Shown: one piece after another, positions 8,335 through 63,184 of the stretch | Position numbering within the stretch: the stretch's first letter is position 1 | Layout of the letters: every line of letters begins with the position of its first letter | Assembly: GCA_002269645.1 (NCBI GenBank) | Contig: NIVC01000024.1 | Span: forward strand, 806,001 to 870,000 | Direction: 5' to 3' | Source of the DNA: Macrostomum lignano | Taxonomy: Eukaryota | Length of the DNA: 64,000 nt | Notes under the pieces: model-generated | What the model was told of the DNA's origin: nothing | What the model saw: only the letters and a program-made list of their open reading frames with translations | Databases searched by the model: none | Made by a program: the position numbers and the translations under genes

Positions 8335-9248
8335 GGTCTCATCTCATTCTCTCTTGTACTCTTAGTAGGCTGGCTGAACAATTTTCTTAATTGTTTATTA
8401 TATAGTAGCTTTGCTTAACTACGAGTATTTTTTGTAAGTCGTATATGAGCGTATTGCACTTTGTTTCTTTAAAGTTGCTTCTATAGAGGCTTCTCCCATT
8501 TAAAAAAAATTTTTGTGGCTTACGATCTGGCCGTTTGCGAGGGCTTTCCCAAAGTAGTGTTACTTTTCATTATAGCTCTCGTTCTGATGATCCAAATAAC
8601 ACATAGTTTCGCACATTTTTAGCGGCAATTCTCTTCTCCATATTAATGTGAGCATCTTTGGTATTTTTGACATGCTTATTACTATGTTTTTATCCTCCAT
8701 TTTTATTATTTATGAACGCACCTGTCAATTTCAAGTTTCTTAGGGGGTTAAAACATCGAACGAGCCATCTTGACGTAGCAGCAGCACCCTGTGATTGACA
8801 TGGCTGACAGGGCTTCTTGACCTTCTCTATCGCGGATGCACCTGTTGTCTGATCCCTTGTTCAGTAGCTGAATTAGGCACCTCTGCTTTCAAGTGCTGAA
8901 CTCAGAAGGTTAAATAATAAAGTGGAAATAAACTACAATAATATTCCTCCTATCTTTGACATGTAACACGCTCTACCAGCCGTCCCTTTTTGCAGACTTT
9001 GTTGAAATGTGTACGAGTAGTTCGCTTGATGTTAAGTTGAAGAAACATCCAAATGAATTATGAATCACAAAAATATCATAGAAAATAAGCAGGCGCTGTT
9101 ACTGTACGATGGAAAAAAACTGGAAAAAGGAAATATGTCAATACGACTACTGCCAGTAGCAATGCTGCTTGTCATTCCACAGAGCGAACTGTCAGTGTCG
9201 GCAGGAGCTTGGCGCAGTCAAAGAGGCTGTCCAGCCAGTCCAGGGACC

Positions 9249-11117
9249 TCACGGGTCCAGCTGCTGGGTGTCGACGTTCAGCTGCAGGCCGAACCTCTTG
9301 AAGGTGATGATGTTGAAGAAGTTGGTCAGAGCCTGCAGGTCCTCCTCTGTGATGCTCCTTGGAATCCGATGGAACTTGTACTTCTCCGACTGGTAGATGC
9401 CGCCCAGCACGGACTTGGACTCCTTGATGATGAGCACATCCGGTGCCAGCCGGAAGCGCTGCCGCACGTTGGCGATCAGGAAGTTGAAGGTGCCGTCCTC
9501 GTTCCGGTTGGACAGAACCGTCACCCACGCGTTGTGGCCGCCGCTGTTCACGTCGAACAGGAAGTCGTTCTTGTTCCAGTCCTGGTGGCCCACGAACTGC
9601 ACCATCTCCATCACGGCGCTCACCTGAGGCAGGTACTTTGCGGGAAAGCCGTACAGCCGGTCCAGCATTCCGAGAAACCGCGGCAGGAAGACTGGGTTCA
9701 TCCGGGAGATCACGTGGGCCCGCGACTGCATGGAGAAGAAGTCGAAGCCCTTCCCGATGATCTTGCCGACAATCTGCGACGTCTTCTTGGTGGAGAAGGT
9801 CTTGGCGATCTGACCGTACAGCTTGACGCCTGCCTGCACCGCGGCGATGTACCCAACGGCTGCAGACCTTCTGAAGCGGGCGCCTCTCACCGGGATGTCC
9901 AGCATGAGGGCGAACCTGCGGAAAGCGGCCAGGTCGAAGAACGCCATCAGAACGTCGAGGTCGGCGTCCCGAATGGACGCGGGGACTTTGTGGATGACGG
10001 TCTCGGATGAGCCGAAGGCGCCCCACATCGAGCTGGACTTTCGCTCGACCACCAGCAGGTCCGGAGCGAGCTGGAACGACGTCTGGAAGTCGGCAATCAC
10101 GAAGTCAAAGCCCCGGGAGCCGCCGTTGTGCGCCAGGACGCTGACGAACTTCGTGGAGCCACCCGAGCCGGAGCGAAACAGGATGTTGAAGTCGTGCCAC
10201 TCGCTCTGTCCGAGGAATGGCAGCAGGTCGAAGACGCCCCGCCTCACCTCGCTTCTCACGGTCGGTGACACGTCAATCATGTTGAGCGCGTACTCAACAA
10301 AGCTGGGGTACTGGCTGGGATCGACCTCTGCGATCGCCTGCATGGAGGCGCTCTGGCTGAAAACCTCGAAGCCTCTGCTGGTGATTCTTCGGATCGGCGT
10401 GGACACCGTCAGCTCCTGCCTCTTCACGAGGTCACTCAACCACTGGAACTTCGACAGGAAGCTGCTCACGCCGGTGCGGAGCGAATCCTGGCTTCCCGCC
10501 GACCTCCGAGACCTCCTGAGTGAAGCCGGTTGAGCAGCCATGGCTGGGTGACTCAGGATCCGACTTGCTGCTTCTCGCCTGAGCAGTGCCGTCAGCGCCG
10601 GCATGTCGCGGAATGCCGGTCCCCACTGCGCCTCATCGCAGCGTCTCCATGGCAACGCCCAGTCTCCGCAGTCCCTAGACGCGAAGCTGCACGAGACGAG
10701 AGTGGAGAAAGCGCCGAACTGGATGGCGCTTCCGGAGGTCCGGGCGGAGCCGACGAACAGCTGGTAGCGACACAGCGGCACCTCGACCTCAATCGCGAAC
10801 GAGGTGGCCGCAAAGTCTTCGGACTCGGCAACTCGCAGCAGCCGGCTGACGAAGTGGGCGGGCAGGAAGCGCAGCTGCTGGACCGCCTGTGCCGCGTCCA
10901 CCGAGCCCTCGACAAAGCTGACGTCCTCCGCGGAGCTCGTGAAGTTGCGCACCAGCCGAGCGGCGTCAGCGGCCTCGGTGGCGGCCAGGCGGCTGGCGAA
11001 GCTGGCCAGGGACGCTCGAAGGCTTCGCTGGTCGGCCGCGGGCAGTGGGTCGGCGACGACCAGAGCGCCGCAGAGGACGAACAGCAGAGGCAGCAGAGCG
11101 CGCATTGCAAAGTGCAT
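9249..11117 (-). CDS. Intronless secreted 622-aa protein: signal peptide plus three related alpha/beta domains separated by furin-type sites; family not recognised
   Basis: Long GC-rich ORF with hydrophobic N-terminus (ALLPLLFVLCGALVVA). RRSRR at aa 201-205 and RFRR at aa 414-417. Domains 2 and 3 align (GFxxFS, SGG, FxLAPDxLxx, FFxxxxFxRF). TATA box upstream. Confidence 0.85.
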   Translation of the reverse strand: MHFAMRALLPLLFVLCGALVVADPLPAADQRSLRASLASFASRLAATEAADAARLVRNFTSSAEDVSFVEGSVDAAQAVQQLRFLPAHFVSRLLRVAESEDFAATSFAIEVEVPLCRYQLFVGSARTSGSAIQFGAFSTLVSCSFASRDCGDWALPWRRCDEAQWGPAFRDMPALTALLRREAASRILSHPAMAAQPASLRRSRRSAGSQDSLRTGVSSFLSKFQWLSDLVKRQELTVSTPIRRITSRGFEVFSQSASMQAIAEVDPSQYPSFVEYALNMIDVSPTVRSEVRRGVFDLLPFLGQSEWHDFNILFRSGSGGSTKFVSVLAHNGGSRGFDFVIADFQTSFQLAPDLLVVERKSSSMWGAFGSSETVIHKVPASIRDADLDVLMAFFDLAAFRRFALMLDIPVRGARFRRSAAVGYIAAVQAGVKLYGQIAKTFSTKKTSQIVGKIIGKGFDFFSMQSRAHVISRMNPVFLPRFLGMLDRLYGFPAKYLPQVSAVMEMVQFVGHQDWNKNDFLFDVNSGGHNAWVTVLSNRNEDGTFNFLIANVRQRFRLAPDVLIIKESKSVLGGIYQSEKYKFHRIPRSITEEDLQALTNFFNIITFKRFGLQLNVDTQQLDP

Positions 11118-11202
11118 CGGACTGAGTGCTCAGAGGTGTTTGCTTTGAACTGACTGCTCGGAGATGAGCTCAATTAACATCTGCTCTATCAGATCCGATG
11201 GT

Positions 11203-11210
11203 CTTTTATA
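11203..11210 (-). promoter_or_regulatory. TATA box (TATAAAAG) of the 622-aa gene
   Basis: Canonical motif about 90 nt upstream of the ATG at 11117. Confidence 0.55.
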
Positions 11211-14120: not shown

Positions 14121-15630
14121 CTAGTAGTACAGAGGCACCCCGTAGCGCTGCGGAACCCTTCGAGTCCGGAGTGGCCGGCCCGCCCTTGTATCGCCGGTCT
14201 CCTCCCTCTCGGGCGCTTCTTCCCCAGGCGCTTCCACCTCCAGCGCTTCCATCTCCGGTGCTTCCATCTCAGGCGCTTTCATCTCAGGCGCTTCCATCTC
14301 CGGTGCTTCCATCTCAGGCGCTTCTATCTCAGGCGCTTCCATCTCAGGCGCTTCCATCTCAGGCGCTTCCATCCGTCTCTGCCACTGGTATTCACCGTCG
14401 TCCTCAGATTCCTCCTTCTCCTCGCCCGCTGGTTCCGCTTCCGCAGCAGGGTCGGGCTGCCGCTCCATCCGGGGAGCTCGACGGGGCCCTTTAGCGTCGT
14501 CAACGGGTTTCACCCGGTAGCGAGGCAAGAGTTTGTTGAAGTGCACCACCTTTGGAGCGAACTCTCGACCTTTCACCTTCCTGTCATACCAATCCTTCTG
14601 CACCCTCTGATAGGACGCTGTCTTCTCCCGTACTTCTCGGTGAGCTTCCTCGAGAATCTCTCGCAGGTGCTGAACTTCCTCGCAATATGGCTCGATCTCC
14701 GGGGGCCGGGCTATTCCTATATCAACTGGTAGGGCCATCTCGTGGCCGTGCAGAAGAAAAAAACGGCGAATATCCCGTACCACGATGAACGCTCGAACGG
14801 TACGCCATGAGTGCGGCACATACGAACTCGTCCCATCTCTTCTGGTCCGGCGCATCGACAAGATGGCTACGAAGCACTGCCGTCAGCGTCTTATTGAAAC
14901 TCTCGACCTGTCCGTTCCCCGCAGGGTGATAGGCAGTCGTCCGAGTCTTCCAAATATTCAGATTCTCACATAGTTGGCTGACTAACTGGGACTCAAAGTT
15001 GGCTCCCTGGTCGGAGTGGATAATCCCGGGTGTCCCGTAATGGCAGATCCACTCTTCCAGCATCGCCCTCGCACAGGTGCTCGCCGTTTGGTCTGGCACG
15101 GGGACAGCCACCGGCCATTTGCTGTACGCGTCTTGCATTGTTAAAACGTATTTGTTGCCGCGATTGCTGGTCGGTAACGGCCCGATTAAGTCCACCATTA
15201 CTCTTTCGAATGCTCTGTTGCTCGCGATGGGCTCCAAGGGTGCTCTTCGACGCATTCGCGGTTTGCTTCGGTTGCAGACATCGCATCTCCTCACATACTC
15301 CTCGACTTCCCGCTTGAGACCCGGTCTCCAAAATCGGCTTCTGATTTTCTCGATTGTTTTCTTGACTCCGAAATGTCCTCCACCTGGGCCGCAGTGAAGA
15401 GCTTGCAGGACTTCGCCGACCATAGCCTTCGGCAGCACAATCCGTGGTGCGTAACGCCCGACGCCCTTGATCATGAGTACTCCCTCCGTGAGCTCCAGCT
15501 GAGGCATCTGGGCCCAAAAAAAGGCCCGAGCCGCGGGCGACGCGTTTCGTGGTGGCCCCCCGAATACCGCGCTGGTTCTCACAGCTGCGCTGCTGGGCCC
15601 GATGTCATTGTCGGCCGTCTGTGCTGCCAC
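14121..15630 (-). pseudogene. Gypsy integrase (HHCC zinc finger, DDE core) with frameshifted C-terminal tail carrying MEAPE repeats
   Basis: LH..GGHFG..CDVC; VMVDLIG, IHSDQG, NGQVESFN; frameshift at the A-run 14757-14763. Confidence 0.92.
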
Positions 15631-15669
15631 TAGGTCGCCTGGGTCGATCGTTCCGCCTAGCGCCGTCGC

Positions 15670-16985
15670 TCACACCGCGGGGCAGTCATGAATTTGGCAG
15701 GATGGACAGCTGTCCATTTCTGGATGCCGTCGTAGCGGTTTTCGCGACAAGGCGTCCGCGTTCTGGTGGCGGGCTCCAGGGCGATGCTCCACATAGAAGT
15801 CGAAAGGTGCCAGTCGCTCCAACCACCGTGCCAGTTGGCCTTCGGGTTGCTTCATGCTTCGGATCCATTGCAGGCTGGAGTGATCGGTGCGAACGCGGAA
15901 CCTTCGACCGAGTAGATAGTATCGGAATTTTTCCACAAACGTCACTACGGCCAGGAGTTCGATTCTTGTCGTGCAGTAGTTGAACTCGGCGCCGTGTAAG
16001 CGTCGGCTTCCGTACGCAATGACCCGCTCGGACCCGTCCTCCTGGATCTGCGACAACACCGCCCCGAGGCCCTGCCGAGTACTCCCATCCATGTCCAAGA
16101 TGAACTCTCCCGCTTTGGCTTCGAAATTTGGGTACGCCATGACGTGACATCCGGTCAGCTCTTCTTTGAGTTTTTTGAAGGCCTCGTCGTGTTCAGCGCT
16201 CCAGCGGAAGTTCTTGTCCTTCTTGGTCAGGTCGAACAACGGCGCGGCGACAAGCGAGAATTCAGGTATGAAGTTCCTGTAGTACCCCGCCAGGCCTAGG
16301 AATGACTGCAACTCCCTCGTGTTTCTCGGTGTATTCCAATTGTTGACTTCCTTTATTTTTTCAGGGTCGACATCTATACCGTCCTCCGACACAACGTGCC
16401 CTAAGAATTTCACTCTGTCTGCCAAAAATCGGCATTTAGATGGCTTCAGTTTGAGATTGGCGGCCCGTAGTCGTCGAAACACCGCTTCCAGGTTTTGCAG
16501 ATGTTCTGGGACCGTTCGCGACCAGATTATGATGTCGTCGATGTACACGAGCGCCATCTTCCAGAGGAGATCATGCAGCACCATGCTCATCAGCCGAGTG
16601 AACGTTGCCGGTGCATTGGTCAGTCCAAACGGCAGGACATTGAACGCAAACTGTCCTCGGTGCGGGACCACAAACGCAGTCTTGTGCCGATCCTCCCCTT
16701 TGACGGCGACTTGCCAATATCCGGAGAACAGGTCAAGAGTCGAGAACACTGCAGCACCTCTTAGTGCTTCGAGGGCGTCATCAACCCGCGGGATCGCGAT
16801 GGCATCTCTTACTGTTAGTTGGTTCAGTTCTCGATAATCGATGCACAGCCGCAGCTCTCCGTCCTTCTTACGGACACACACCACCGGTGAGCTCCACGGC
16901 GATTATGTCGGCTCGATCTTCTTGGTCGCCAGCAGCTCATTCAACTTCAACCGGTCAACTTCACCACGCCAATGGGGGGGGGGGG
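15670..16985 (-). pseudogene. Gypsy reverse transcriptase plus RNase H
   Basis: SPWSSPVVCVRKKDGELRLCIDYRELN, LDLFSGYWQ, YIDD, RTDHSSLQW. In-frame stops at 16903 and 15670; frameshift at the G12 run 16974-16985. Confidence 0.95.
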
Positions 16986-18068
16986 CAGCCGCCGCGGGGG
17001 CTGCTTCACCGCCGGTCCAGTGGTCTCGATTTCGTGCTGCACTAAATCGGTTATCCCGAGTTGTGACGCGTCCTCGGCTAAGACGTCTGTGTAGCGATTG
17101 ATCAGTTCCAGGAAATTCTTGCGATCGACCTCTGTGAGCTTCTTGGACCCGTGCTCGTTCAGGGACGCCTCCGGATCCCAGGGGTCGCTGTTCCTCAAAC
17201 CCGAAACTGGAGCTCCCTCGTCGACGCTGACCATCATCACTTCCTGAGCTGGATCCGCCGGCCGGAACCAGCCAATGACAGCTCCCTTCCGCAGTCGAAG
17301 TTCCGAATCCGTGATGTTTGCAAAGTGCACCGGAAGAGTGTTCCCCGGCTGGACGAAGCATACACTCCTGGCTTACATAGGTCGTTCGTCGCTTTTTGGT
17401 CGCTTGTCTGACTCAGCAATTCCCAACACTCCAACATTTCGAGTCTCCGTCCTGCGGATTCTTGCTGAGGCGGTGATCTCGTGGTGCGCGGGTATAACCA
17501 CATTCTCGCTCAGGTACAGCCTGCAGATTACGGGCTTATGTTTGGTCTCTCTTATCGGCACTCTCGATCCATTTACATGAAATATTCCTCTGGCAAAATC
17601 AATTAGACAGGCGTGCCGGCGCAAAAAATCTGTGCCCAGCAGTAGCTCATATCCGACTCCTTGGACCACTGCGATTGGCGTCTGCAGGACTTCCGAACCG
17701 AACTGTAGTTGCGGTGTAACGCACCCTTGGACCTTCATAGGGGTCCCATTCGCGGAGATAAGGTCTGTATTGGTTGGACTAAGTTCCGCTCGAAAAACCC
17801 GACTCAATCGTTGCCAGGTTTTCTCATTCACCAGCGACATCACCGAACCCAAATCTAGCAGACACGGCAGCTCGACTCCGGCGATCTTCACGGATACATA
17901 GACGGACACCGGATGAAACGCTGTGGCAGGACGGTCCTCGCTCTCTGAGTAGCCCCCCTGATGTCCTGCCGTATGATGCTCAGGAGGTGCTACGCCGCCA
18001 TGTGATGGGGCTTCTACTGTCTCGGCGGAACCCCCTCGCCCCTGCGGGGGTTCCCCTTGCCGTTTCCC
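16986..18068 (-). pseudogene. Gypsy aspartic protease and downstream spacer domain
   Basis: CLLDLGSVMSL (D[TS]G degenerate to DLG) and LLGTDFL; in-frame TAA at 17373. Confidence 0.85.
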
Positions 18069-18190
18069 TGCTGCTGGCGAGACGGGCAGTTCGTAGTCAG
18101 GTGTCCCGGTTTCTTGCAAGTGAAGCAGCGAACTCCCCCGCCTTTGGACTGTCCATGGGTGGTGTCTTCAGCCCGTTCGGCCGCCCGGCT
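18014..18190 (-). pseudogene. gag C-terminal remnant with CCHC zinc knuckle
   Basis: VRCFTCKKPGHLTTNCP at 18127-18086; gag frame stops at TAG 18016-18014. Confidence 0.85.
18027..18068 (-). promoter_or_regulatory. -1 programmed ribosomal frameshift signal (gag to pol)
   Basis: Slippery G GGA AAC in the gag frame, 7-nt spacer, 9-bp perfect stem GGAACCCCC/GGGGGTTCC; a -1 slip enters the protease ORF frame. Confidence 0.8.
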
Positions 18191-18822
18191 GCTGTCACGC
18201 AGTGCATTGCGTTCTTCACCTGCAGCAGGTCAGCGTGGCAGAACTCGGAGTTGGGGTTGTAGCTGGTGCGCTTGAACGGAGTCCGCAGCCATGAGGCTCC
18301 AGCTGGAGCTTCTCGCGGAGTCTCAACGAACTCGCAGGCAAAGCCAGCCAGCGCTGAGCACTTCATGTCGACTATCTTCGCATGTGATGTGAAGTACCAC
18401 GCGATGCAGTCCTCATATCCTCCAGAGTTGCTCGGATCATTTCTATGCCACAGTGAGTCATCCTTTGGCAGCTGGCCGTTGCCGTTGACCCTTTGCCAAC
18501 CCGACCTGCTCGTGCCTCTCTCCTCAGCCAGGTCGGACACTCCGAGCCAGATGTTGCAGCCACAGTTGAGACTCGGCATGCTGCCCAGCAACTGCAGCGA
18601 GCTGTACGAGTTGAGCAGCTCGCCTCCGATCGATGCGCAGTGCCGATTCGCTGAGCACCAGCTGTGGCTGTGAGCTGTGCTCACGAACACGCATTTGCCG
18701 GCCTCGAGACGGAACGGAGCGGGGCACGGTTGAGCTGACGGCCAGAGCAGCTGGCAGACCGCCGCTTGCAGAGCGAGTGCTGTGGCGATCTGATGGAGCT
18801 GCATGCGGATGTTGGGGCTCAC
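18097..18822 (-). pseudogene. Secreted C-type lectin gene B, 5' part (signal peptide, complete CTLD, start of PAN-like domain), truncated by the retroelement
   Basis: CPAPF...KCVFV, WCSANRHCASIGGEL, IWLGV, W..NDP..EDC, DMKCSALAGFACEF. After about 18200 the ORF runs into out-of-frame gag sequence. Confidence 0.85.
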
Positions 18823-21027
18823 CGATGAGATTCAGTTCTGTCAGGGCTTTTACCTTGCGAAGCGTAGCTATTATAATTGATCTCCTGTCATTTTATTTTT
18901 CTGCTCACGCTTTTAATTGCACTTGGCTTAAAAGCTACTATTCAAGAGTAACTTTGAAAGCATTAAAATCTTTTTATAGCTCGTATTGTAATAGACAGCT
19001 TCACATTTGTGTTGATAAGCTTTGCGAAGCCAACTGTCACTCATCCATCAAGCCGCTATACCAGTTTTTTTATTCGAGAAGCTGTCAATTTATCGTTCAT
19101 TCCCTTTAAGCCTTGCACGAACTGCAGCTGAATGTTCCATTTTCATACCAGTGGCGGATTCTCATAATGCTAGCTGTTGCAGTCAGGAGAAAAAATCTAC
19201 AATACTACTAATGAGAGACTTCAGAAAAGATGTTGAACCGCATTATAGGGACCTTGGTCTGAATTTGCCTAAAGTCAATGATATTTAGAATCACTTAGAA
19301 TTGTGGCATACTCTTGACGAATCCCGAATCGCTTAACGAGTGCAGGCCTTCCAATTCGCTTTCGAAAGCTCGGCTTAGCCCAATCTAATTTATTTTGGGT
19401 TAAGTGACGATAAATGCCCTTCGACTCACGCAAATTATTAAAATTTGTACGCGAATTCTGTAAAGCAGTTTAAATTCTCTCCCCGATAGACTAATGGGAT
19501 AGAGTGAATCTTCAGACTGGTGGTAGTGGAGCTATTTATACATGTACATATAGTTATATATGATTCTATCTCTACAAGTAAGTGTACATGTGATGGATAC
19601 TATACATCTACATGTACATAAAGTCTTTCGCAAATTCTTTTAATTTTAAGTGAAAATAAACTAAATTATTAAAGACGCTATATATGTATTGTATATATAT
19701 ATATAACTTATGTATATATACGAGTTACATTGGTAACAACGATATAAAATCATGCATTTAGATTTTTTCAATTTTGAATCATCAGAACAAAATCATATGT
19801 TCGATCGTAATTTCAGAATTTTAGTTTAAAATAATTAATCCTTGAAAATGTAAAATCTTTTTATAAAATGACTCATTTTAAACGAAAGCTTCGCGGAAAT
19901 TGAAAGTGCAAAAGAAACAGATGCTTAATAAAAAAGGAGGATTCATAGTACACCTGTCGGCGTCACAAATTTGTAACGGTGTTGCTAGTTTGCTAGTTTT
20001 AAATGTTCAAACAAAATCTATTAAAAGGCAACTGCAGCAAGCCAAAGTATGCTCATTATTTAGTTTGATAGTTATAAAAAAACGTGCTTAAAATAGATAT
20101 TACTAAACATTGTCATTTGTGCATAGCAACAAAATCGTTTATTGGTACTAGTTTAACGTAAATATTTTACCTGGTTTATGGATTTGGTCGTGGAGTTAAG
20201 TAAGACTGCTTAAGAAGTATTTGTTGCATTATTAAGCTTGGTATAAAAATTGAAAATAAAGATTTGTTTAGCTTACTTACATATAAGACAGCTAAGCATA
20301 AACATTATCGGAAAGCTTCATTATTACATGTTAACAGGCTTACATGTCCGACGACGGACAGTGAAAAGTGAAAACACATTGAAGTTAAGCTTCTATCCAG
20401 AGGTTTTATACAGAGGTTATTACATTGTGTTTTAGTTTATTATATATATGCTTAGACTTTTAGCATTAGCCCTGGTCCCCTCTTGCCTGGAAGAAACGTT
20501 GTAAAATAAATGCAACTCAATATTTATTGTATTGAAGGAAGGATATATTAATATAATATTGGATATAGTTAGAAATATTTTTGTGTTAGTGTCGCTCAGT
20601 TTTTATAATGCCAAGCTAATTTAAACGAGCACTGGACTCAACATGTCTTTGATAATGATTCGAGAAAGAAAGCGGAAGTTTCCAATGGAACTCTTACTGA
20701 AATATCGATTACAAAGGTTCCAAAACTAAAAAACAATGCAATAACTATTGAATATATTTTCTCAGCTTTGATTTGAGTTAGTGTAAATTTTTTACGCTTA
20801 GAGTTTTATGACTCCATACACGTATTGTCATTATAGAAAATATTTAATTTTACTGCAATAGAAAATAGAAAATTTACCAAATATTTCTTATCTTAAAATG
20901 AGCAGAATAGAAATATTTGTTATAACTGTCTTTGGTACAAAAACCAAAGTCTGCAATTGCTCTAAACAAAATTTGGTTTCAACTACAATCAGCATTTAAG
21001 CTGTAAATCAATTATTGCTGTGCCAAG

Positions 21028-27982
<6,955 letters not shown>

Positions 27983-29241: not shown

Positions 29242-30241
29242 ATGTCCGGGCCAAAGCCAAATGAGATTAGCGAGGAGCAGCGAGTCGAGTTCAAGCTTAT
29301 GTTCGACTCCTTCGTCAAGAATGAGGAGCGCACAGTGCTGCCGGAGGATCTGGAGATGATGATGCGGAAGTTGGGCTTCCACCCGTCCAAGATGGAGATC
29401 CAGGTGCGAAATTATGAAATCATTTCGCCTTTCTCTGTTAATATTATATCTCTTAAAACACCTACTCTACATTTGCCCCTGTCTCACCCTACCTCTCTCT
29501 CTACCTCTCTACCCTGTGCCTCTCTACCCCGTCTTTTCCGCTCTATCATATTCAGTCTGCATATTGAATAACTTTAGTCCATCTTCATTCATATGTGTCT
29601 GCTTCACTCCCAACTATCTTTTTTTCTGCCACTTTGCCCTTTAGCTACATGTACCTATCTTGGTGCCCATTCACAGACGTGAAAGCAACCGTTTTCCACC
29701 AAAACAACAAAAAAGCATAATAGTACACTTCTGTTTTGTTGCGTGGGCTGGAAATGTTGCACTTTTCTGCTTTGATAGGATCGACTTGATTAGAAAGGTT
29801 ACAGTAGACATTCACTAGTGAAAAGTTCTGCTGTACTCTGCGTTCAATTATCCAATTCTCTACGCTTGGCTTGCTCTCTCATGGCTGTTGTCAGTTGCAC
29901 AAAGCTGTCACAGAACTCGTCGCTCACTCGCACAGGGCATGATCGAGGAGATCGACACGGACGGCTCCGTGACCATCAACGGCATGTCCTACGAGCAGTT
30001 CGAGCTGCTGGCGGCTAGAAAAGCTCACGACGACATCAGCTCGGAGGACATCACGGATGCTTTCCGTGTGTTCGACCGGGACGCCAACGGGTTCATCTCG
30101 GCAGCTGAGATTCGCAACGTTCTCACCCAGGTAGGCGAGACCTACACCGACGAGGAGATCGATGCGTTGCTACAGGCGGCGAAGCCGGACATGGACGGAA
30201 ACATCAACTATGAGGACTTTGTGCAGAGAATGATGGAGTGA
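29242..30241 (+). CDS. Divergent calmodulin-like EF-hand protein; exons 29242-29403 and 29936-30241
   Basis: EISEEQRVEFKLMF..., GMIEEIDTDGS, DAFRVFDRDANGFISAAEIRNVLTQVGE, DMDGNINYEDFVQRMME*; phase-0 intron. Confidence 0.9.
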
Positions 30242-33455: not shown

Positions 33456-36400
33456 CTAGACGTCAAACGCGTGTTGAATTCTGCAGTGTCGAAGCTGCGC
33501 CTGGTAGGGAGAGAAAACCAGGCCGCAAAGCACCGCGTTATTGTCGTAGTTGAACTCGGCTGATTTGAACTCCGGGTTGAGGACAACCTGCGAGGCGTGC
33601 TGTATACGATTTTCAAAATGACACTTGCGTCCCGGCCATTGAAATGAAAGTAACAGTAGAACCTAATCTGTCTATTGCATGATGCACTCTTGACATTTAC
33701 ATCTACCGCGACACTTGCATGACGCTCCCACACGTGTAAGATAACCTTTGCGTCACACCCATGAACAGCTGAAGGACGTTGAAGGGCGCTGCACTTTTCT
33801 TTCTTAGAAATGAGCTGGATATGTTTCGTATCGCCAGTGCATTTAGATTGTTCTCGAGTATTCAAGCTCGATATATCAAGCTCGTTTCTTAGAAAATCGA
33901 ATCTATACGAGCGTAGTGGCCTTCTACAATGCTTCAGTTTTTCATGGACACACACCGATTGTACCATGACCTTTGTGCCCGCTGGGCACTTATTCTTGCC
34001 TTTTAATGCCATAGACTACATTTAAGCCCGCTTGCAGGACTTTAAATGCTATAAACCATGGATGAAGGAATACACTGGATTGCTCATCTGAAATAGTCTA
34101 TGGTCGAGTTCTTTCCTCCAAACTTGGAATTTACCCCCCCCCCCCTAGGAATCTATTGGCTGATGAAAGTTAAAAATAATCCCCCCGTAGGACTTGACTG
34201 GCTGCTGAATCAGTCAGGGGGAATTCGAAGATCGGGGTGTGAGTTTGACTTTGAGTGTTTTCATAGAATATTGTATGTAGCAGTATGTATCAAAGCAGAC
34301 GAGCTGCAGAGAGAAGGGTGCATATACATGTAAGAAGGTAAGAGCTATTTGTCATTAATTTGAAGGAAATCCAAAGATGTATTTGATAGACTGATTCAGC
34401 AGCCAGTCAAGTCCTACGGGGGATTATTTTTAACTTTCATCAGCCAATAGATTCCTAGGGGGATAAATTCCAAGTTTGGAGGAAAGAACTCGACCACATA
34501 CTATTTCAGATGAGCAATCCAGTGTATTCCTTCATCCATGCTATAAACGTACTTTAATGCAAATTAGCGGGCAGTTAAGTATAAGATATCGGCTCGAGGC
34601 ATTTAATGACATTTAACGCCCGATTATTCTGTCCCACTTTGTCAAGGACACAAATGTGTATGGCACAATAATAATAATACCCATGCTTTAAGGGCGTTAA
34701 TGGGAAAATCAGAGGGCGCCGTTAGGCAAGTTATGATGTTATTGATGCAAGTTGCATAGCAGGGGGTATCCATCTGCCCTCCCTTCCTAGGGTCTTTTCG
34801 AGGGCCGTGGGGATGGTGCATGGGGTGGTCACCCCCTGATATGCAACTTGCATCAAAAACATCATAACTTGCCTAACGGCGCCCTCTGATTTCCCATTAA
34901 CGCCCTTAAAGCATGGGTATTACTGTACTATTCTTACATCTTACCAGTGGCGGCGCAGGGGGGGGGGGCAGGGGGGGGGCAACTGCCCCCGGGTGACCAC
35001 AGGTCACTGCCTCAAGGGGGGTGACCACCCCACCATCCCCACGGCCCTCGAAAAGACCCTAGGAAGGGAGGGCAGATGGATACCCACTGCTATGCAACTT
35101 GCATCAATGATTAAAAATGCATTTTTATAAGAATTTTCGTGTCGTACATTCGTTTTGTAAGAAGTGTGTCATAATTTGTTCGTAATTCTTTACTTTCTTA
35201 GAAAATTTGTGTTCTAATTCAAATGTTATCATTTGTTTAATTACAATTGGTAGGGGAAGAAGGTGACCACCTAACTACTGCCCCCCCCCAACCAGAGATA
35301 CTGCGGCTGTGCCGCCACCGCATCTTACATGGCACTCTTACATGAAATTTACATGACACAGACCGTCTCTTACATGTAAATTTACGTGGCATTATTTTTC
35401 ACAGAAAAAAAGTTTCGCATACATGTACATTGACACACTCCGACGCTATACATGGCAATTGTATCACACGTACATGAGTGCATGACGAACATGTCGTTTG
35501 CATGATAAAAATCTGGCGCATACACGAGACAGTTCGACACTTTTGCGTAACAACGATGAAAATTGCATGACTGTGCATAGAAACACACGCAATAACATTG
35601 CGATTTAAAGCTCACTCTAAATCGGTAAAACCCGAACGGCAGATCCGTGATGTCAATCCACTGGCAGTCCAGATCGTGCAGGTAGTTATCGCTGCAGCCC
35701 ACCGAGATGCCCTGATTGCCGGTGTCCCAGGGGTCCCTGCTGCACTGGTACTTCGGCTGCAGGCCTCCGCGGCACGAGCTGTCCTCCAGACAGAAGCTGG
35801 CCTTGTGCCCGCTGGCCAAAGCCAAATGGGTGCCATTGCGCTGCTGATAGATTTCGTAGGCTGCAAAGTACGGCATGCTGTGGTAGTGCATGTGGCAGGT
35901 GTGCCATGTCCAGCTTTCGCTGCCGTTGTAGGGCCGGTAGTCACTGGTGCCGATGTTGCTCACTATGGTGGAGAACCGGAGCAGAGTGCGAAGGGCGTAG
36001 GGCCAGTCTGCGGGTTGTTGCGGAGAAATTAAATTACCGATCTACTGTAAGTAGCAATGCGCGGCTTGTTGATTGTGATTTAATCTACTAAAATTTCATC
36101 ATCCAGCTTCGTTATGGTTTGTCTGAATAAGCTTATATTATTGCTATTTTTGTTATAGTAAGCATAGTGCACGTGTTTTAGTATTTTAACTAGCAATCTA
36201 GTGGTTAAATTGACATTAAAAAACACACATCTTCTAAAGTACCACATTTTCTTAAAATTAACATCTTTCTTCAATGTTATAAATTGAGTATTGTTTGTCT
36301 AGTTTTTAGTCTAGTGTAGCTGAACTTTATTTATTGTCATTTTTTAAATCTGTTCAACGATTTATTTATTTATGGGCTGGTTTAATTATTGCCTATAGGT

Positions 36401-44115: not shown

Positions 44116-47100
44116 ATGGCAATCAGCTCTGTTGCTGGCAGCCTGCAGCAGGCCATAGCAACCACAGCGGTTGACCTAGCTGGATCGAAGCGCTCTCTGG
44201 CGCAAACTCTGCGCTCTGGGAAGGAGCAGGTTTGTTTCTTCTAGACTTTACAGTGGCTGGCCTAAAGCACTAGCAATTTTGTATATAATTTCCACTCTTC
44301 CCTCCCTGATCGAGTGGGTCGCAGTCTCTTTTTTTCCTCTCTCCCCACTTTTTTTTCTCTCGTCTCCCCCTTTCTCTCTTCTCTCCTCTCTAATCTCCCT
44401 CTTTTCTCTTCTCTCTTTTCTTCTCTTCTTTCTTCTCTCTTCTCTTCTCTATTCTCTCCCCTTTTCTCTCTCCCCTCTTCTCTCCCCTCTCCTTTCTGCC
44501 CATTCTCCTTTCTCTCCTCTCTTCTCTTTTCTCTTTTCTTCTCTTCTTTCTTTTCTTCTCTTCTCTCTTTTCTTCTCTTCTCTCTTCTCTTCTCTTCTCT
44601 CTTCTCTCCCCTTTTCTCTATCCCCTCTTCTCTCCCCTCTCCTTTCTGCCCATTCTTTCTCTCCTCTCTTCTCTTTTCTCTTTTCTTCTCTTCTCTCTTC
44701 TCTTCTCTTCTCTCTTCTCTCCCCTTTTCTCTCTCCCCTCTTCTCTCCCCTCTCCTTTCTGCCCATTCTCCTTTCTCTCCTCTCTTCTCTTCTCTCTTCT
44801 CTTCTCTTCTCTTCTCTCTTTTCTTCTCTTCTCTCTTCTCTTCTCTTCTCTCTTCTCTCCCCTCTTCTCTCCCCTCTCCTTTCTGCCCATTCTTTCTCTC
44901 CTCTCTTCTCTTCTCTTCTCTCTTCTCTTCTCTTCTCTCTTTTCTTCTCTTCTCTCTTCTCTTCTCTTCTCTCTTCTCTCCCCTCTTCTCTCCCATCTCC
45001 TTTCTGCCCATTCTTTCTCTCCTCTCTTCTCTTCTCTCTTCTCTCCCCTCTTCTCTCCCATCTCCTTTCTGCCCATTCTTTCTCTCCTCTCTTCTCTTCT
45101 CTCTTTCTCTCCCATCTTCTCTCTCCCCCATATTCTCTTTCCTCTCCTCTCTCCTCTAATTCTCTTTTCTCTTTCTTCTCACCTCTCTTCTCCCTTCTCT
45201 CCTCTTCCCTCTTCTCTCTCCTCTCCACTCTCCCTTCTCATCTCTTGTCTCCTTTCATCTCTCATCTTATCTATCCTCTCAACTCTTTCTTTTCTTTTTT
45301 CTTACTTTCTTTCTCATCTTCTCTCTCGCCTCTCGCCTCTCGCCTCTCCTCTTTCCTCCTCTCACTCCTCCATTCTCTCTCTTTTTCTCTCATCTGGCCC
45401 GCAGCAACGAGCTGGATTATTTATCTGGCCCATGAGGTCAAGAAGCTTGCCTACCCCAGGCTTAAAACCAGCCTCCAAATACTTTTTTCTAAGAAACCTC
45501 GTCCTTCCACTTAGCCGTAGATTTGCTCCTATCTTTCTCATACTGAAAGACCCGGCTTTCCTGACCGAATTAGCCGAGCTGGCGCGCCGTGACTTCTCCA
45601 GGCGCGACTGTCGCTCAGGCCTGATTCGCCTCATCCAGTTGAGAACACTCGACTGTTCTGGCGTAAGCGCTGGTCTCAGCTGGTCCGGAGTTCGAATCCT
45701 GGAGTCGATGAGTTCGAATAGATTCGCATTGAAGCGCCTGGCTTATCTGGCGGCCTCTTTGATCTTTGATAACGACAGCGCCGCCGAATTGCTTATCCTA
45801 GCAACTAATCTGCTGCGCAAGGACCTCTGCTCTACCTGTCCCGTGGAGACCAGCTCGACCCTGTGCTCACTGGCCTCGTTTATGACTGCCGACTTGGCTA
45901 AGTGAGTCCTAGGACTTTTTTGGAGGACTCATCGCTGGGTTTTCGGGGCTTTGTGAATTGTTGAATATGTCAGATCTTAGTTTTACTCATTAAATACGTA
46001 TCCGAACCACAGAAACTAGAATAACTAGATGGGCCACTCAGCAGATTTGCGTGTAAGCTACTTTCAGTTCAGTAGTAAGTTGAACTGAAGCATTTTAATG
46101 TATTTTTAAAGCCAAGGCTACTTTATTGGCTCTGGTCCCCAGCTTAAACCCTCCAACCGCGCCTTACCACACTAAACCCCCCGCCCCACCCTAATTTTTA
46201 TTGCCTTTCTCGGAATTCCAGCCTAAAGCTGTCATGTACATTTCAGTGGACTGGCCAATGTAGATTATGGCTGAACCAATTAGCAAGTTGTTTACGCCTT
46301 TAAGCTTGGGCTTCTGAAATTATTAAAGTAATCTCAGCTGCCTTGATTTTTATAAAATAGCTTATTTATTCTTCTTTGCTACTGAACTGAAAGTAGAAAG
46401 CTGTTTTGCTAAGTATTGACTTATCAGATTTGTGTCAGATGTTTTTCAGCAGTCTTGAGCTGTATGGACCTCTAAAAACATTCGCAGAGACCTCTGCAAC
46501 GATCTGCTCTCTCTTGCTGCCAGTTCGCCCCACGCCTGCGTCAGAGCTCGCTGCACTCTGCTGCTGCCCCGCCTGCTGGCCCGCTTCCCTGAAGCGGCCG
46601 GCCTAGCGTTTGCCAGCCTTCGCGACCGTCTCGGCGATGCTCACGCCGCAGTTCGCGGCGCCGCCGTCTGCGCCACTTGCGAATTGGCCGGCAGCGCCGG
46701 CGCCAATCCCGGCGCCTGTTTGCCGTTGGCGCCGGCGCTGTTCCGCCTGCTCTGCTCCGGCGAGTGCTGCTTCGGCTTGGCAACGGCCTGGCACGCTGCC
46801 AAACTGTTGAGGCTGTTCGCTTTGCTGACTCAGCTGGAGCCGCGGCTTGGCAGGAAGCTGATCGACCCGATTGTGGCACAGCTGCAGGTTTGTGACTGCG
46901 CCATTTGGGAATACTTCTTAGGGATTCACTCTTCACCGCTTCCCGGAGACTTGAGAAACTAACCAGAGAGCTTGGACATTCTTTATGGAACTTGAGCACC
47001 ACAAATCCAGATCCCTGAGACACTTATGGGAGAGCTGAGACACTTATTGAAGAGTTGAGACACTTATCGGAGAGAGAGTTGGGACACTTATCGTAGAGCT

Positions 47101-51366: not shown

Positions 51367-54300
51367 TGTGTCAGTCGGGCAAGGAGCAGAACCCGCACTA
51401 CCTGAAGAGTCCAGCTGACCAATCCAACAAATCGGATGCGGTAGACTCTGCAAACTCGCCACTGTCGGTGGACCAGCAACTGCTCAGGGGCTTAGCCAGA
51501 TCTGATTACTATTTGATGCAGCACCGGAGGCTGGCCGAGCAGTCGGTCGGTAGGAGAAGCAAATCCGGGTCGAAGAAGCTGCGCCAACCGCCACCACCTG
51601 TAGAGGCTGGGGTCCGCGACTGCGAGAACCTCGGAGAGGAGTCGGACGAGCTGTTCTCTGCCGCTGTGGTCAGTGCCGACATTGTGTGCCCGCATTTCTT
51701 CGTACTCCAGCCTTGGGTCACAGTTTTGGTGATGCATTGGTCACAGTTCTGGTGATGCATTGGTCACAGTTCTGGTGATGCATTGGTCACAGTTCATATC
51801 ACTCTAATTGGTCACAGTTCTGGTGATTGGTCACAGTTCTGGTGATTAGTCACAGTTCTGTTCATGCATTGGTCACAGTTCTGGTGATGCATTGGTCACA
51901 GTTCTGGTGATGCATTGGTCAAAGTTCTGGTGATGCATTGGTCACAGTTCTGGTGATGCATTGGTCACAGTTCTGGTGATGCATTGGTCAAAGTTCTGGT
52001 GATGCATTGGTCACAGTTCTGGTGATGGTGATACATTGGTTACAGTTCTGGTGATGCATTGGTCACAGTTCTGGTGATGCATTGGTCACAGTTCTGGTGA
52101 TGCATTGGTCACAGTTCTGGTGATGCATTGGTCACAGTTCTGGTGATGCATTGGTCACAGTTCTGGTGATGCATTGGTCACAGTTCTGGTGATGCATTGG
52201 TTACAGTTCTGGTGATGCATTGGTCACAGTTCTGGTGATGCATTGGTCACAGTTCTGTTCATGCATTGGTCACAGTTCATATCACTCTAATTGGTCACAG
52301 TTCTGGTGATTGGTCACAGTTCTGGTGATTGGTCACAGTTCTGTTCATGCATTGGTCACAGTTCATGTCACAACACATTGGTCACAGTTCATATCACTCT
52401 AATTGGTCACAGTTTATGTCACACACATTGGTCACAGTTCATATCACTCTAATTGGTCACAGTTTATGTCACACACATTGGTCACAGTTCATATCACTCT
52501 AATTGGTCACAGTTTATGTCACACACATTGGTCACAGTTCATGTCACACTATAATTGGTCACAGGTGTCCACCGCGCTTGATTCACCGGAAGTAGCTGGC
52601 GTTTCTAAGAAAGACAACGCCAATTCGCTTTTAAAAGAAAAGCAAAAGAAGAAGCGGAAGAAGGCAAAGCGCGAGTCAGTGAGCTCCTCGGTCGGAGACT
52701 ACGAAAGCTTGCCAAACTCAAAGCTCAATAATTCGAAGGCGAAGTCGGTTAATCTGACCGAATACCTCACCGTGAGCAGCCTCTCTCCCGGCTGCGTGGA
52801 GCAGTCCGACCTGACAGCTAAACTGGAACTGGCTTGGCCAACTGATGCTGAGCAGAGGCTGCTGCATCTGAGACTGCGGGCTCCGGCTCGGCTATCAGTG
52901 GTGTCGGCGCACCTGCTCACTCTCGCTGCTCAAGAGCCGGCAGACACGCCTGTACACTTTCCTGGGTGCCCGCTGGCTCCTGGACAGTGCACCGCTTCCG
53001 TCTGCGTGCCAGTGAGTCTGTGGGGCATCGAGATTGTTTTCCAGATTTATAATTCAGTTGTGCCAGTCTGTAGAGTCAGTTGTGCCAGTCTGTAGAGTCT
53101 GTTGTGCCAGTCTGTAGAGTCTGTTGTGCCAGTCTGTAGAGTCTGTTGTGCCAGTCTGTAGAGTCTGTTGTGCCAGTCTGTAGAGTCTGTTGTGCCAGTC
53201 TGTAGAGTCTGTTGTGCCAGTCTGTAGAGTCTGTTGTGCCAGTCTGTAGAGTCTGTTGTGCCAGTCTGTAGAGTCTGTTGTGCCAGTCTGTAGAGTCTGT
53301 TGTGCCAGTCTGTAGAGTCTGTTGTGCCAGTCTGTAGAGTCTGTTGTGCCAGTCTGTAGAGTCTGTTGTGCCAGTCTGTAGAGTCTGTTGTGCCAGTCTG
53401 TAGAGTCAGTTGTGCCAGTCTGTAGAGTCAGTTGTGCCAGTCTGTAGAGTCAGTTGTCCCAGTCTGTAGAATCAATTGTCCCAGTCTGTAGAGTCAGTTG
53501 TCCAGAGAGTCCTACCAGTCCGCAGTCTGAGAGTCCCTCAGTCCGCAGTCTGAGAGTCCCCCAGTCCGCAGCCTGAGAGTCCCCAGTCCGCAACCTGAGA
53601 GTCCCCAGTCCGCAGCCTGAGTGTCCCCCAGTCCGCAATCTGAGAGTCCCCCAGTCCGCAGCCTGAGAGTCCCCCAGTCCGCAGCCTGAGAGTCCCCAGT
53701 CCGCAGCCTGAGAGTCCCCAGTCCGCAGCCTGAGAGTCCCCAGTCCGCAGCCTGAGAGTCCCCCAGTCCGCAGCCTGAGAGTCCCCCAGTCCGCAGCCTG
53801 AGAGTCCCCAGTCCGCAACCTGAGAGTCCCCAGTCCGCAGCCTGAGTGTCCCCCAGTCCGCAATCTGAGAGTCCCCCAGTCCGCAGCCTGAGAGTCCCCA
53901 GTCCGCAGCCTGAGAGTCCCCAGTCCGCAGCCTGAGAGTCCCCAGTCCGCAGCCTGAGAGTCCCCAGTCCGCAGCCTGAGAGTCCCCAGTCCGCAGCCTG
54001 AGAGTCCCCCAGTCCGCAGCCTGAGAGTCCCCCAGTCCGCAGCCTGAGAGTCCCCAGTCCGCAACCTGAGAGTCCCCAGTCCGCAGCCTGAGTGTCCCCC
54101 AGTCCGCAATCTGAGAGTCCCCCAGTCCGCAGCCTGAGAGTCCCCCAATCCGCAGCCTGAGAGTCCCCAGTCCGCAGCCTGAGAGTCCCCAGTCCGCAGC
54201 CTGAGAGTCCCCCAGTCCGCAGCCTGAGAGTCCCCAGTCCGCAGCCTGAGAGTCCCCCAGTCCGCAGCCTGAGAGTCCCCCAGTCCGCAGCCTGAGAGTC

Positions 54301-54953
54301 CCCAGTCCGCAGCCTGAGAGTCCCCAGTCCGCAGCCTGAGAGTCCCCCAGTCCGCAGCCTGAGAGTCCCCAGTCCGCAGCCTGAGAGTCCCCAGTCCGCT
54401 GCCTGAGAGTCCCCAGTCCGCAGCCTGAGAGTCCCCCAGTCCGCAGCCTGAGAGTCCCCCAGTCCGCAGCCTGAGAGTCCGCACCCTGCCGCACCCTCAG
54501 TGGAGCAGCAAGCGCCGCGCCAGGCTGAAGCTGCACTGCCTGTTTGGCGACGCGGTGAATTTTTGCGTCGCCGACGTTCGTCTGCCGTCGCTCCGCTTGT
54601 CCGCGCAGCTCCGCCCGGATTCGTCGATGACGCCGGAGCTGCTTCAGCAGCGCGTGGCCGAAGGCCGCCTGCCCGGGCAGGCGCAAGTTCAGCTACGCCT
54701 CGTTGCTAAGGGCGCCACCGAGTTTGGCGCTATCGAAGCTCGGCTGGCGCCGATCGCGCGCCCTCTCATTTCGGCGCCGAATTCGACGCTCTGCGCCTCG
54801 GTCGATTCTCGAGGTTGGTCGGCCTCCCTGCTGGCGAAATTGTCGGCTGACTCGTCGGTCAGACTGGAGATCCGGGCCAGGGATCAGGCTGCGGCGGACG
54901 GGCTGGCCGAGGAGCTGCGCTGGGTTCTTGATCGATCGGTTTCTTCACTCTGA
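44116..54953 (+). CDS. AP3D1: AP-3 complex subunit delta, strongly diverged; exons approximately 44116-44229, about 45550-45901, 46488-46887, 47644-47856, 48732-49387, 49665-50031, 51333-about 51683, 52565-53011, 54501-54953
   Basis: KRLAYLAAS, LLRKDL, LEPRLGRKLIDP, LLYECVNT, NFDWYI, LEVQERA, PDGLDLEAWINAPL and NPHYLKS match remembered AP3D1 motifs in order. The exon 1/2 junction phase is not resolved. Confidence 0.85.
44320..45400. repeat. CT-rich low-complexity/tandem tract (AP3D1 intron 1)
   Basis: Direct. Confidence 0.9.
46008..46421. mobile_element. MITE-like family A copy 2 (right end truncated)
   Basis: CACAGAAACTAGAATAACTAGATGGGCCACTCAG start; body similar to 6170 and 55997. Confidence 0.75.
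47010..47610. repeat. 18/22-bp repeat (CTGAGACACTTATCGGAGAG[ACAG])
   Basis: Direct; intronic. Confidence 0.93.
47905..48695. repeat. 12-bp repeat (AGATCCCCACCC)
   Basis: Direct; intronic. Confidence 0.95.
50040..50500. repeat. CT-rich repeat (intronic)
   Basis: Direct. Confidence 0.85.
50958..51248 (-). repeat. 30-bp minisatellite (CAGCTGGGGTGACTCACACAGATTGGGTGA)
   Basis: Direct; reverse complement of the array at 56750. Confidence 0.93.
51710..52564. repeat. About 23-bp repeat (TTGGTCACAGTTCTGGTGATGCA)
   Basis: Direct; the last unit provides the splice acceptor. Confidence 0.92.
53055..54480. repeat. Two abutting arrays: 22-bp GTCTGTAGAGTCTGTTGTGCCA (to about 53500) and 21/22-bp CCCCAGTCCGCAGCCTGAGAGT
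   Basis: Direct; last AP3D1 intron. Confidence 0.94.

Positions 54954-58673: not shown

Positions 58674-63184
<4,511 letters not shown>

Follow-up and report, generated by a model that had tools for sequence, protein, structure and literature searches.

Within a 64,000-nucleotide stretch of the genome of the flatworm Macrostomum lignano (the window; positions 806,001 to 870,000 of contig NIVC01000024.1, assembly GCA_002269645.1), we analyzed a single-exon gene on the minus strand at window positions 9249..11117. The open reading frame (ORF) listing gives it an ATG start, 622 codons and a TGA stop, and the 622-amino acid (aa) protein, with a predicted signal peptide and three domains, is identical to an NCBI protein of this contig. 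Judged by exhaustive profile searches, the gene is neither an orphan nor a flatworm invention, and it belongs to a large, unnamed protein family of protists and giant viruses. The explanation that best accounts for our observations overall, and that we hold with moderate confidence, is that it encodes a secreted precursor of this eukaryotic and giant-virus family that is processed by a proprotein convertase.

Layout of the precursor and its protein family

Read by eye, the N-terminus of the protein shows the n/h/c arrangement typical of signal peptides: residues 1-22, MHFAMRALLPLLFVLCGALVVA (11052..11117; like every feature of the gene, on the minus strand), comprise a basic n-region, a hydrophobic core and a small-residue VVA site, followed by DPLP. 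We conclude that the protein is predicted to enter the secretory pathway as a secreted precursor, as an earlier reading of the DNA alone (the original prediction) had proposed. Three domains follow: a Cys-bearing N-domain (D1; aa 23-201, 10515..11051), which contains a single N-glycosylation sequon at N58, a first repeat domain (D2; aa 206-413, 9879..10502) and a second one (D3; aa 418-622, 9252..9866).

We searched 1.84 billion representative proteins exhaustively with HMMER and a profile of D2 and D3. The profile matched 488 proteins at E ≤ 1e-3, of which 275 also pass a threshold of 1e-10 and 41 one of 1e-30; many of the matched proteins have two copies of the domain. The family has a signature, carried by both D2 and D3, that consists of G-F-x2-F, W, G-G, F-x-L-A-P-D, S-x2-G-G-(L/I)-(F/W/Y), P-x2-(L/I)-T-x2-D and F-F. 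Fifteen relatives also possess a conserved N-terminal domain of ~200 residues with the motifs (E/L)(Y/F)IG.AR(R/K) and RG(F/Y)T..E and a Cys-bracketed loop. A hidden Markov model of this N-domain matches the flatworm D1 at E 2.7e-52, and the full-length alignment is collinear. Seven protist relatives (P0004, P0005, P0006, P0011, P0012, P0020 and P0156) have the N-domain and two repeats in the same order, at 21-38% full-length identity. They share with the flatworm protein the signal peptide, the Cys-loop N-domain and the motifs GF..F, W, GG, F.LAPD, S..GG(L/I)(F/W/Y), P..LT..D and FF, but their linkers lack R-x-[KR]-R, and two of them, P0005 and P0020, end in a C-terminal membrane anchor. Most full-length members of the family open with a hydrophobic N-terminus. 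The flatworm protein thus has both marks of this unnamed 200-aa family, the profile match with its signature and the layout of its cellular members. We conclude from these alignments that the ancestral cellular layout is a predicted signal peptide, a Cys-bearing N-domain and two repeat domains, and that M. lignano has kept it.

The two repeat domains are clearly homologous to each other. BLASTP aligns residues 206-417 with residues 418-622 over 167 aa at 29% identity (E 3e-30), and every motif on which the original prediction had based this homology occurs in both: GF.xFS, W..(N/D)(I/F)LF..SGG, F(Q/R)LAPD(L/V)L, the SMWGAF / VLGGIY hairpin and the helix DL..L..FF....F.RF. The further claim that all three domains are related extends to D1 solely at the profile level. 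As a single sequence, D1 has no significant similarity to the D2/D3 profile (hhalign probability 0.4%), whereas a profile of 15 N-domains aligns with a profile of 154 repeat domains at 93.5% probability (E 2.3e-7, 130 columns). The register of this alignment runs from the helical pair through the C-terminal helix and places DMPALTALLRREAASRI on that helix, in agreement with the proposal that D1 is a degenerate, Cys-bearing copy. Comparison of family profiles thus shows the N-domain to be a remote copy of the repeat domain. In a full-length AlphaFold2 model, helices and strands follow in the same order in all three domains, the structural likeness that the original prediction had implied. D2 lies closest to the middle domains of other species' proteins and D3 to the last ones (45% and 48% to P0004), which argues that the triplication is ancestral and not a flatworm event.

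A named relative is EP00164_P000950, a three-repeat protein of the predatory protist Ancoracysta twista (EukProt). Other members lie on contigs of cellular eukaryotes, with histone, SNF5, prefoldin or IFT122 genes or a split Ras gene, and many are found on transcript-like environmental contigs of ~2 kb. Two contigs that carry family members are dense and intronless, with mostly orphan ORFs and genes for PTH2, RNase HII, JmjC, ubiquitin, Mrr and glycosyltransferase proteins; we think that these contigs look like giant-virus genomes. L003 (JGI 3300064746) is a 404-kb contig, while L005 and L006 come from the Tara marine metagenome, L005 with 29% GC from the 0.22-0.45 µm fraction. P0107 and P0147 are sequence-level relatives on giant-virus-like contigs. 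Among the matches, most of which have no taxon label, there is no named animal homologue, and the closest relatives, P0004 (38%) and P0007 (31%), sit on transcript-like contigs that also lack such a label. A word-indexed homologue search with the protein, a 16-sequence alignment or P0004 returned the query alone; the method is insensitive for this family and missed even proteins of its own collection that we had placed in the query alignment, so its negatives weigh little. Scans of viral and metagenome contigs confirmed no related loci, with an alignment that is in part too variable to serve as a query.

The original prediction had also called the family unrecognised. This stands in the sense that Pfam assigns no family to the flatworm protein or to the 10 homologues and 66 single-domain members scanned with it, and that a PDB sequence search with the protein and two profiles found no relative; it does not stand in the sense of an orphan, given the 488 relatives in protists and giant viruses. 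Two weak Pfam matches to AdfA among the 10 homologues were dismissed, as they were not repeated in the 66 members.

Although it has no counterpart in Pfam, the repeat domain can be modelled with confidence. An AlphaFold2 model of D3 from a 66-sequence alignment reached a predicted local distance difference test score (pLDDT) of 93.7 and a predicted template modelling score (pTM) of 0.75. Its elements are a helix (2-23), a long hairpin (27-36 and 41-56), two helices (58-72 and 76-91), five strands within 98-168 and a last helix (174-195). We conclude that the family unit, as modelled, is an alpha/beta domain of ~200 residues in which an N-terminal helix, a long beta-hairpin and two helices precede a five-strand antiparallel meander and a long C-terminal helix. 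Foldseek comparison of this model with 350,542 PDB chains gave nothing at E ≤ 0.001 (best E 0.02, with leading template modelling (TM) scores ≤ 0.18). Against a library of viral structures (BFVD), it matched uncharacterised proteins of the Mimiviridae at E 6e-9 to 4e-4 and probability 1.0, the best three with TM 0.57-0.60. Proteins of this type from Hyperionvirus (A0A3G5A862), Terrestrivirus (A0A3G4ZN21), Edafosvirus (A0A3G4ZYQ2) and Borely moumouvirus (A0A6G6ADX5) have the same fold as the repeat domain. They differ from the flatworm protein in having a single domain of ~190-270 aa with ~15% identity and no furin-type linkers. Foldseek matches of the full-length model (pLDDT 69) were meaningless, and we therefore relied on the single-domain model of D3.

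These comparisons also bear on the known folds to which the domain might have belonged. The original prediction had seen a loose resemblance to Cyt delta-endotoxin and volvatoxin A2, which found no support in the Foldseek comparison with the PDB, with no such entry among the hits listed, nor in Pfam; the likeness is limited to general alpha/beta character and size. Neither sequence-profile nor fold searches placed the domain with the aerolysin/ETX-MTX2, MACPF/CDC or actinoporin families. It likewise did not fall among the START / Bet v 1 helix-grip proteins, though the order of elements is similar on paper, and the repeated unit had no Pfam or PDB match that would point to homology with nematode polyprotein allergens.

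Predicted cleavage between the domains

Only two R-x-[KR]-R motifs occur in the 622-aa protein, and they lie exactly in the two flexible linkers between the domains, where the original prediction had placed the cuts. Site 1 is R202-S-R-R205, followed by SAGS (10503..10514), and site 2 is R414-F-R-R417, followed by SAAV (9867..9878), so that Ser-Ala comes after both. The full-length model has pLDDT <50 at 197-207 and 411-421, spanning both sites. When we shuffled the protein 20,000 times, the mean number of motifs was 0.44 and at least two occurred anywhere in 7% of shuffles; one motif in each 17-aa linker window occurred in 0.035% (P = 3.5e-4). The sites are also retained in two M. lignano paralogues of >90% identity, the hypothetical proteins PAA78934.1 (Mlig000053g3) and PAA93605.1 (Mlig031413g1). 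Site 1 reads GRSRR and RRYRR in these paralogues, keeping R-x-R-R despite substitutions, and site 2 is identical in both.

Two features expected of furin/kexin substrates are thus present, predicted entry into the secretory pathway and R-x-[K/R]-R in a flexible segment, and flatworms are known to possess proprotein convertases (PMC2953531, and general knowledge). We think that a convertase probably cleaves the protein into three chains. The predicted products are ~19 kDa (pI 6.2), 23 kDa (pI 5.9) and 23 kDa (pI 9.8).

Among the matches listed, no other representative has R-x-[KR]-R in an inter-domain linker, and we therefore regard the flatworm linker sites as lineage-specific additions. A motif does occur in P0117 (REKR), P0145 (RVRR) and P0148 (RAKR), where it precedes a domain's first helix by a few residues, so cutting just upstream of a domain seems, from these motifs, to recur in the family. 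The absence of linker sites from the other representatives listed is also an argument that the flatworm protein stays an uncut single chain, as in protists, and that both R-x-R-R motifs are simply tolerated linker sequence. Arginine is abundant, at 8.2% of the residues, and two or more motifs somewhere in the sequence turn up in 7% of the shuffles. Their position in each of the two linkers is much harder to obtain by shuffling, however, and the sites have R-R|S-A in common, both lie in disordered linkers, and the motif outlasts substitutions in the paralogues. An exposed R-x-R-R in a protein that transits the Golgi is, moreover, normally cut, as is generally known of furin specificity. We consider an uncut chain rather unlikely.

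The nearest working analogy to a furin-split polyprotein of homologous domains is found in nematodes. The ABA-1-type polyprotein allergens are secreted as tandem homologous units separated by R-x-K/R-R, which convertases cut into lipid-binding proteins. The likeness is one of processing alone: the ABA-1-type units are small, all-helical proteins of ~15 kDa that occur in many copies, and we detected no relation in sequence or fold. At the level of a single site, actinoporin precursors and class I viral fusion glycoproteins undergo a dibasic or furin cut that is followed by a hydrophobic segment rich in small residues, and site 2, RFRR|SAAVGYIAAVQAG, resembles these cut sites. Actinoporins and class I fusion glycoproteins show no fold similarity to the flatworm domain, however, and the flatworm segment is modelled as a packed helix.

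Hairpin tips and possible functions

Of the ten loops of the repeat domain, compared across 154 domains, only the hairpin tip at 153-158 is hydrophobic. It has a mean Eisenberg hydrophobicity of +0.71 and a Wimley-White interfacial score that sums to +2.1 kcal/mol, compared to Eisenberg values of at most +0.15 and uniformly negative Wimley-White scores in the other nine. In D2 the tip is KSSSMWGAF (10014..10040), as located by the D2/D3 alignment and the family column statistics; in D3 it is KSVLGGIY (9393..9416), which fits the family signature S-x-(L/F)-G-G-(L/I)-(F/W/Y). The counterpart in the N-domain is a Cys-bracketed loop of 10-11 residues in which aromatic residues and basic ones or His are frequent; homologues have, for example, CKRILFFKKC, CHHCWLLFHCC and CTSYLFFWTKC. 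The flatworm loop, CGDWALPWRRC (Cys150-Cys160; 10638..10670), falls in the hhalign register at the position of the repeat-domain hairpin tip, and we infer that its two cysteines would form a disulfide. The N-domain loops of P0005, P0011, P0012, P0156 and P0148 contain many His and Cys residues (CHHCWLLFHCCHH) and might represent a variant that binds metal or senses pH.

We propose the following course of events for the flatworm protein. The signal peptide would bring it into the endoplasmic reticulum, a disulfide would close the N-domain loop, and N58 would be glycosylated. A furin/kexin-type convertase of the late secretory pathway would then cut after R205 and R417, leaving three chains. These might separate or, since their opposite charges would permit it, remain associated through non-covalent contacts. 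Because each domain has a conserved hydrophobic or aromatic tip at an equivalent beta-hairpin, and because some homologues (P0005, P0020) are anchored in a membrane, we tentatively suggest that the three tips may bind a membrane or some other hydrophobic partner, be it a surface or a ligand, and that cleavage may loosen or activate the assembly. 

Several observations weigh against a processed precursor with membrane-binding tips. Foldseek found no match to a known lipid-binding or membrane-active fold, and the full-length model has a pTM of 0.44. Since no other representative among the matches listed has linker sites, the protein evidently works as a single chain in other species, and its cleavage may be of no consequence. 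The original prediction had stressed amphipathic N-terminal helices that cleavage would set free; they are amphipathic, but modestly (hydrophobic moments (muH) 0.16-0.34), and in the confident model the helix of D3 is part of the fold. Finally, Mlig000053 and Mlig031413 are not mentioned in the literature full text or the supplements of M. lignano papers that we searched, and we found no expression or localisation data for them.

The helices are central to a different explanation, in which the protein is the pro-form of a pore-forming or otherwise membrane-damaging toxin whose freed N-terminal helices insert into membranes and which serves prey capture, defence or digestion. Predicted secretion, convertase sites just before the first helix of D2 and of D3 and the hydrophobic hairpin tips would all suit such a toxin, as would the new N-terminus at site 2, SAAVGYIAAVQAGVKLYG, a hydrophobic stretch (mean H 0.36) with many small residues. 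R-x-K/R-R directly before a domain in three other members and the presence of the family in predatory or phagotrophic protists such as Ancoracysta point the same way. Yet the domain resembles neither Cyt/volvatoxin, aerolysin, MACPF and actinoporin proteins nor any solved structure, the modest hydrophobic moments and the packing of the helix into the modelled fold argue against insertion, and most homologues have no cleavage site at all. We regard a toxin as unlikely.

By analogy with ciliate granule proteins, the protein might instead be cargo or matrix of regulated secretory granules (rhabdites or gland granules, and extrusomes in protists) whose processing triggers assembly. Predicted processing sites at the domain boundaries of the precursor would be in keeping with this, and the opposite charges of the D1 and D2 products on one side and the D3 product on the other could drive assembly. 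Codon usage that is rich in G or C at third positions (GC3 0.85) could mirror high expression, and the family occurs both in the extrusome-bearing Ancoracysta and on a compact eukaryotic contig with an intraflagellar-transport gene. Against granules stand the presence of the domain in giant viruses as well, the membrane anchoring of some members and a sequence that shows neither the coiled coils nor the low-complexity segments usual in proteins of granule lattices. A granule protein thus also seems improbable to us. The conserved column residues over 154 domains form an aromatic and aliphatic core with few polar positions (K113, D143, S152 and D176); K113 is lost in the flatworm D3 and no conserved polar residue is kept in the N-domain, which argues against an enzyme.

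A bolder extension of the membrane-binding proposal, which we consider doubtful, would have the domain be an unrecognised membrane-active fold (a binder, pore former or fusion aid) that works through its conserved hydrophobic tips, either as a trimer or with three domains as a pseudo-trimer. It would serve phagotrophic protists, and giant viruses whose entry is by way of phagosomes. In a flatworm that gained the domain, perhaps by horizontal transfer, sites that evolved in both linkers would have brought it under the control of furin.

Gene, locus and origin

The three-domain gene of M. lignano is real and transcribed. GenBank gene models of this assembly were built solely from transcripts derived from RNA sequencing (PMC5730564), so that the existence of a gene model implies transcription. 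As the original prediction had stated, the gene is intronless, an uninterrupted ORF in the window sequence, and a candidate TATA box, TATAAAAG (11203..11210), lies 86 nt upstream of the ATG. The reading frame of the partial paralogue model PAA78934.1 opens at the position of TATAAAAG, however, which leaves the transcription start site uncertain. In the window, the ATG is preceded at a distance of 12 nt by an in-frame TGA, the counterpart of which in PAA78934.1 is CGA. One of the two paralogue gene models is 5'-truncated and begins at M171. PAA93605.1 is encoded on the same contig as the gene, outside the window, and PAA78934.1 on another; no further copy was found within the 64 kb.

Contamination was ruled out by the animal-type flanking sequence and by the position of the gene on an 893-kb M. 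lignano contig. Its animal-type neighbours, as identified by Pfam, are a long terminal repeat (LTR) retroelement and exons with lysyl oxidase, EF-hand, adaptin and C-type lectin domains. The LTR retrotransposon remnants occupy adjacent ORFs ~3.6 kb upstream of the gene (14725-18167, minus strand), with an integrase (Integrase_H2C2 and rve, E 4e-20) and a gag-type aspartyl protease (E 1e-7), and an ORF with a C-type lectin domain (Lectin_C, E 6e-6; 18100-18831, minus strand) adjoins them. An exon for the catalytic domain of lysyl oxidase lies at 35385-36041 on the minus strand (Lysyl_oxidase, E 4e-53). Two exons belong to ordinary animal genes, each with a GC3 of 0.72: one with an EF-hand pair (29822-30238, plus strand, E 4e-14) and one for an adaptin N-terminus (46459-46959, plus strand, E 2.5e-10).

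Dozens of minisatellites are spread across the window. Tandem Repeats Finder reports 61 rows at a score of at least 100, where overlapping rows may describe one and the same array; the periods are mostly 12-30 bp, with up to ~65 copies. Examples are the arrays at 1-1648, 23269-24653, 25115-26290, 53505-54480 and 59837-60981, and several arrays yield long spurious ORFs, such as 25106-26293 on the minus strand. The gene itself is overlapped in other frames by ORFs of up to 316 aa (9060-10010, 9823-10533 and 10530-11153 on the plus strand; 9172-10026 and 10592-11173 on the minus strand); the simplest view is that they arise from its GC3-rich coding sequence and are not genes.

The patchy distribution of the family raises the question of how a flatworm came to have it. 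One possibility, for which we see a tentative case and which the original prediction had named beside a retro origin, is horizontal transfer into the Macrostomum lineage from a protist or a giant virus, followed by the gain of the furin sites. M. lignano genes have a mean of 4.9 introns (PMC5730564), which makes a single-exon coding sequence of 1.9 kb somewhat unusual. The GC3 of 0.85 exceeds that of five other coding segments of the window (0.62-0.73), and all homologues that can be placed are from protists or giant viruses, with no named animal among the matches. These arguments are offset by others. Most of the 150 homologues listed lack a taxon label, and the closest, P0004 and P0007, could be animal. 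There are no viral genes among the neighbours that flank the locus in the window, the high GC3 may mirror only high expression, and the findings agree just as well with an ancient origin of the gene and its later loss from most animals.

Regardless of its origin, the flatworm gene draws attention to a confidently predicted domain that is found in hundreds of protist and giant-virus proteins and in one animal and that lies outside Pfam and the solved structures, which makes it a target for structure determination and curation. The occurrence of the family in protists, giant viruses and one flatworm sets gene transfer against ancient origin and widespread loss. In M. lignano, an old single-chain protein of three domains has apparently been turned into a convertase-processed polyprotein. 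Should the hydrophobic hairpins interact with membranes, the family could be relevant to the handling of the phagosomal membrane by giant viruses and phagotrophs. Because M. lignano allows transgenesis and RNA interference, the flatworm gene may be the easiest route to the function of the family.

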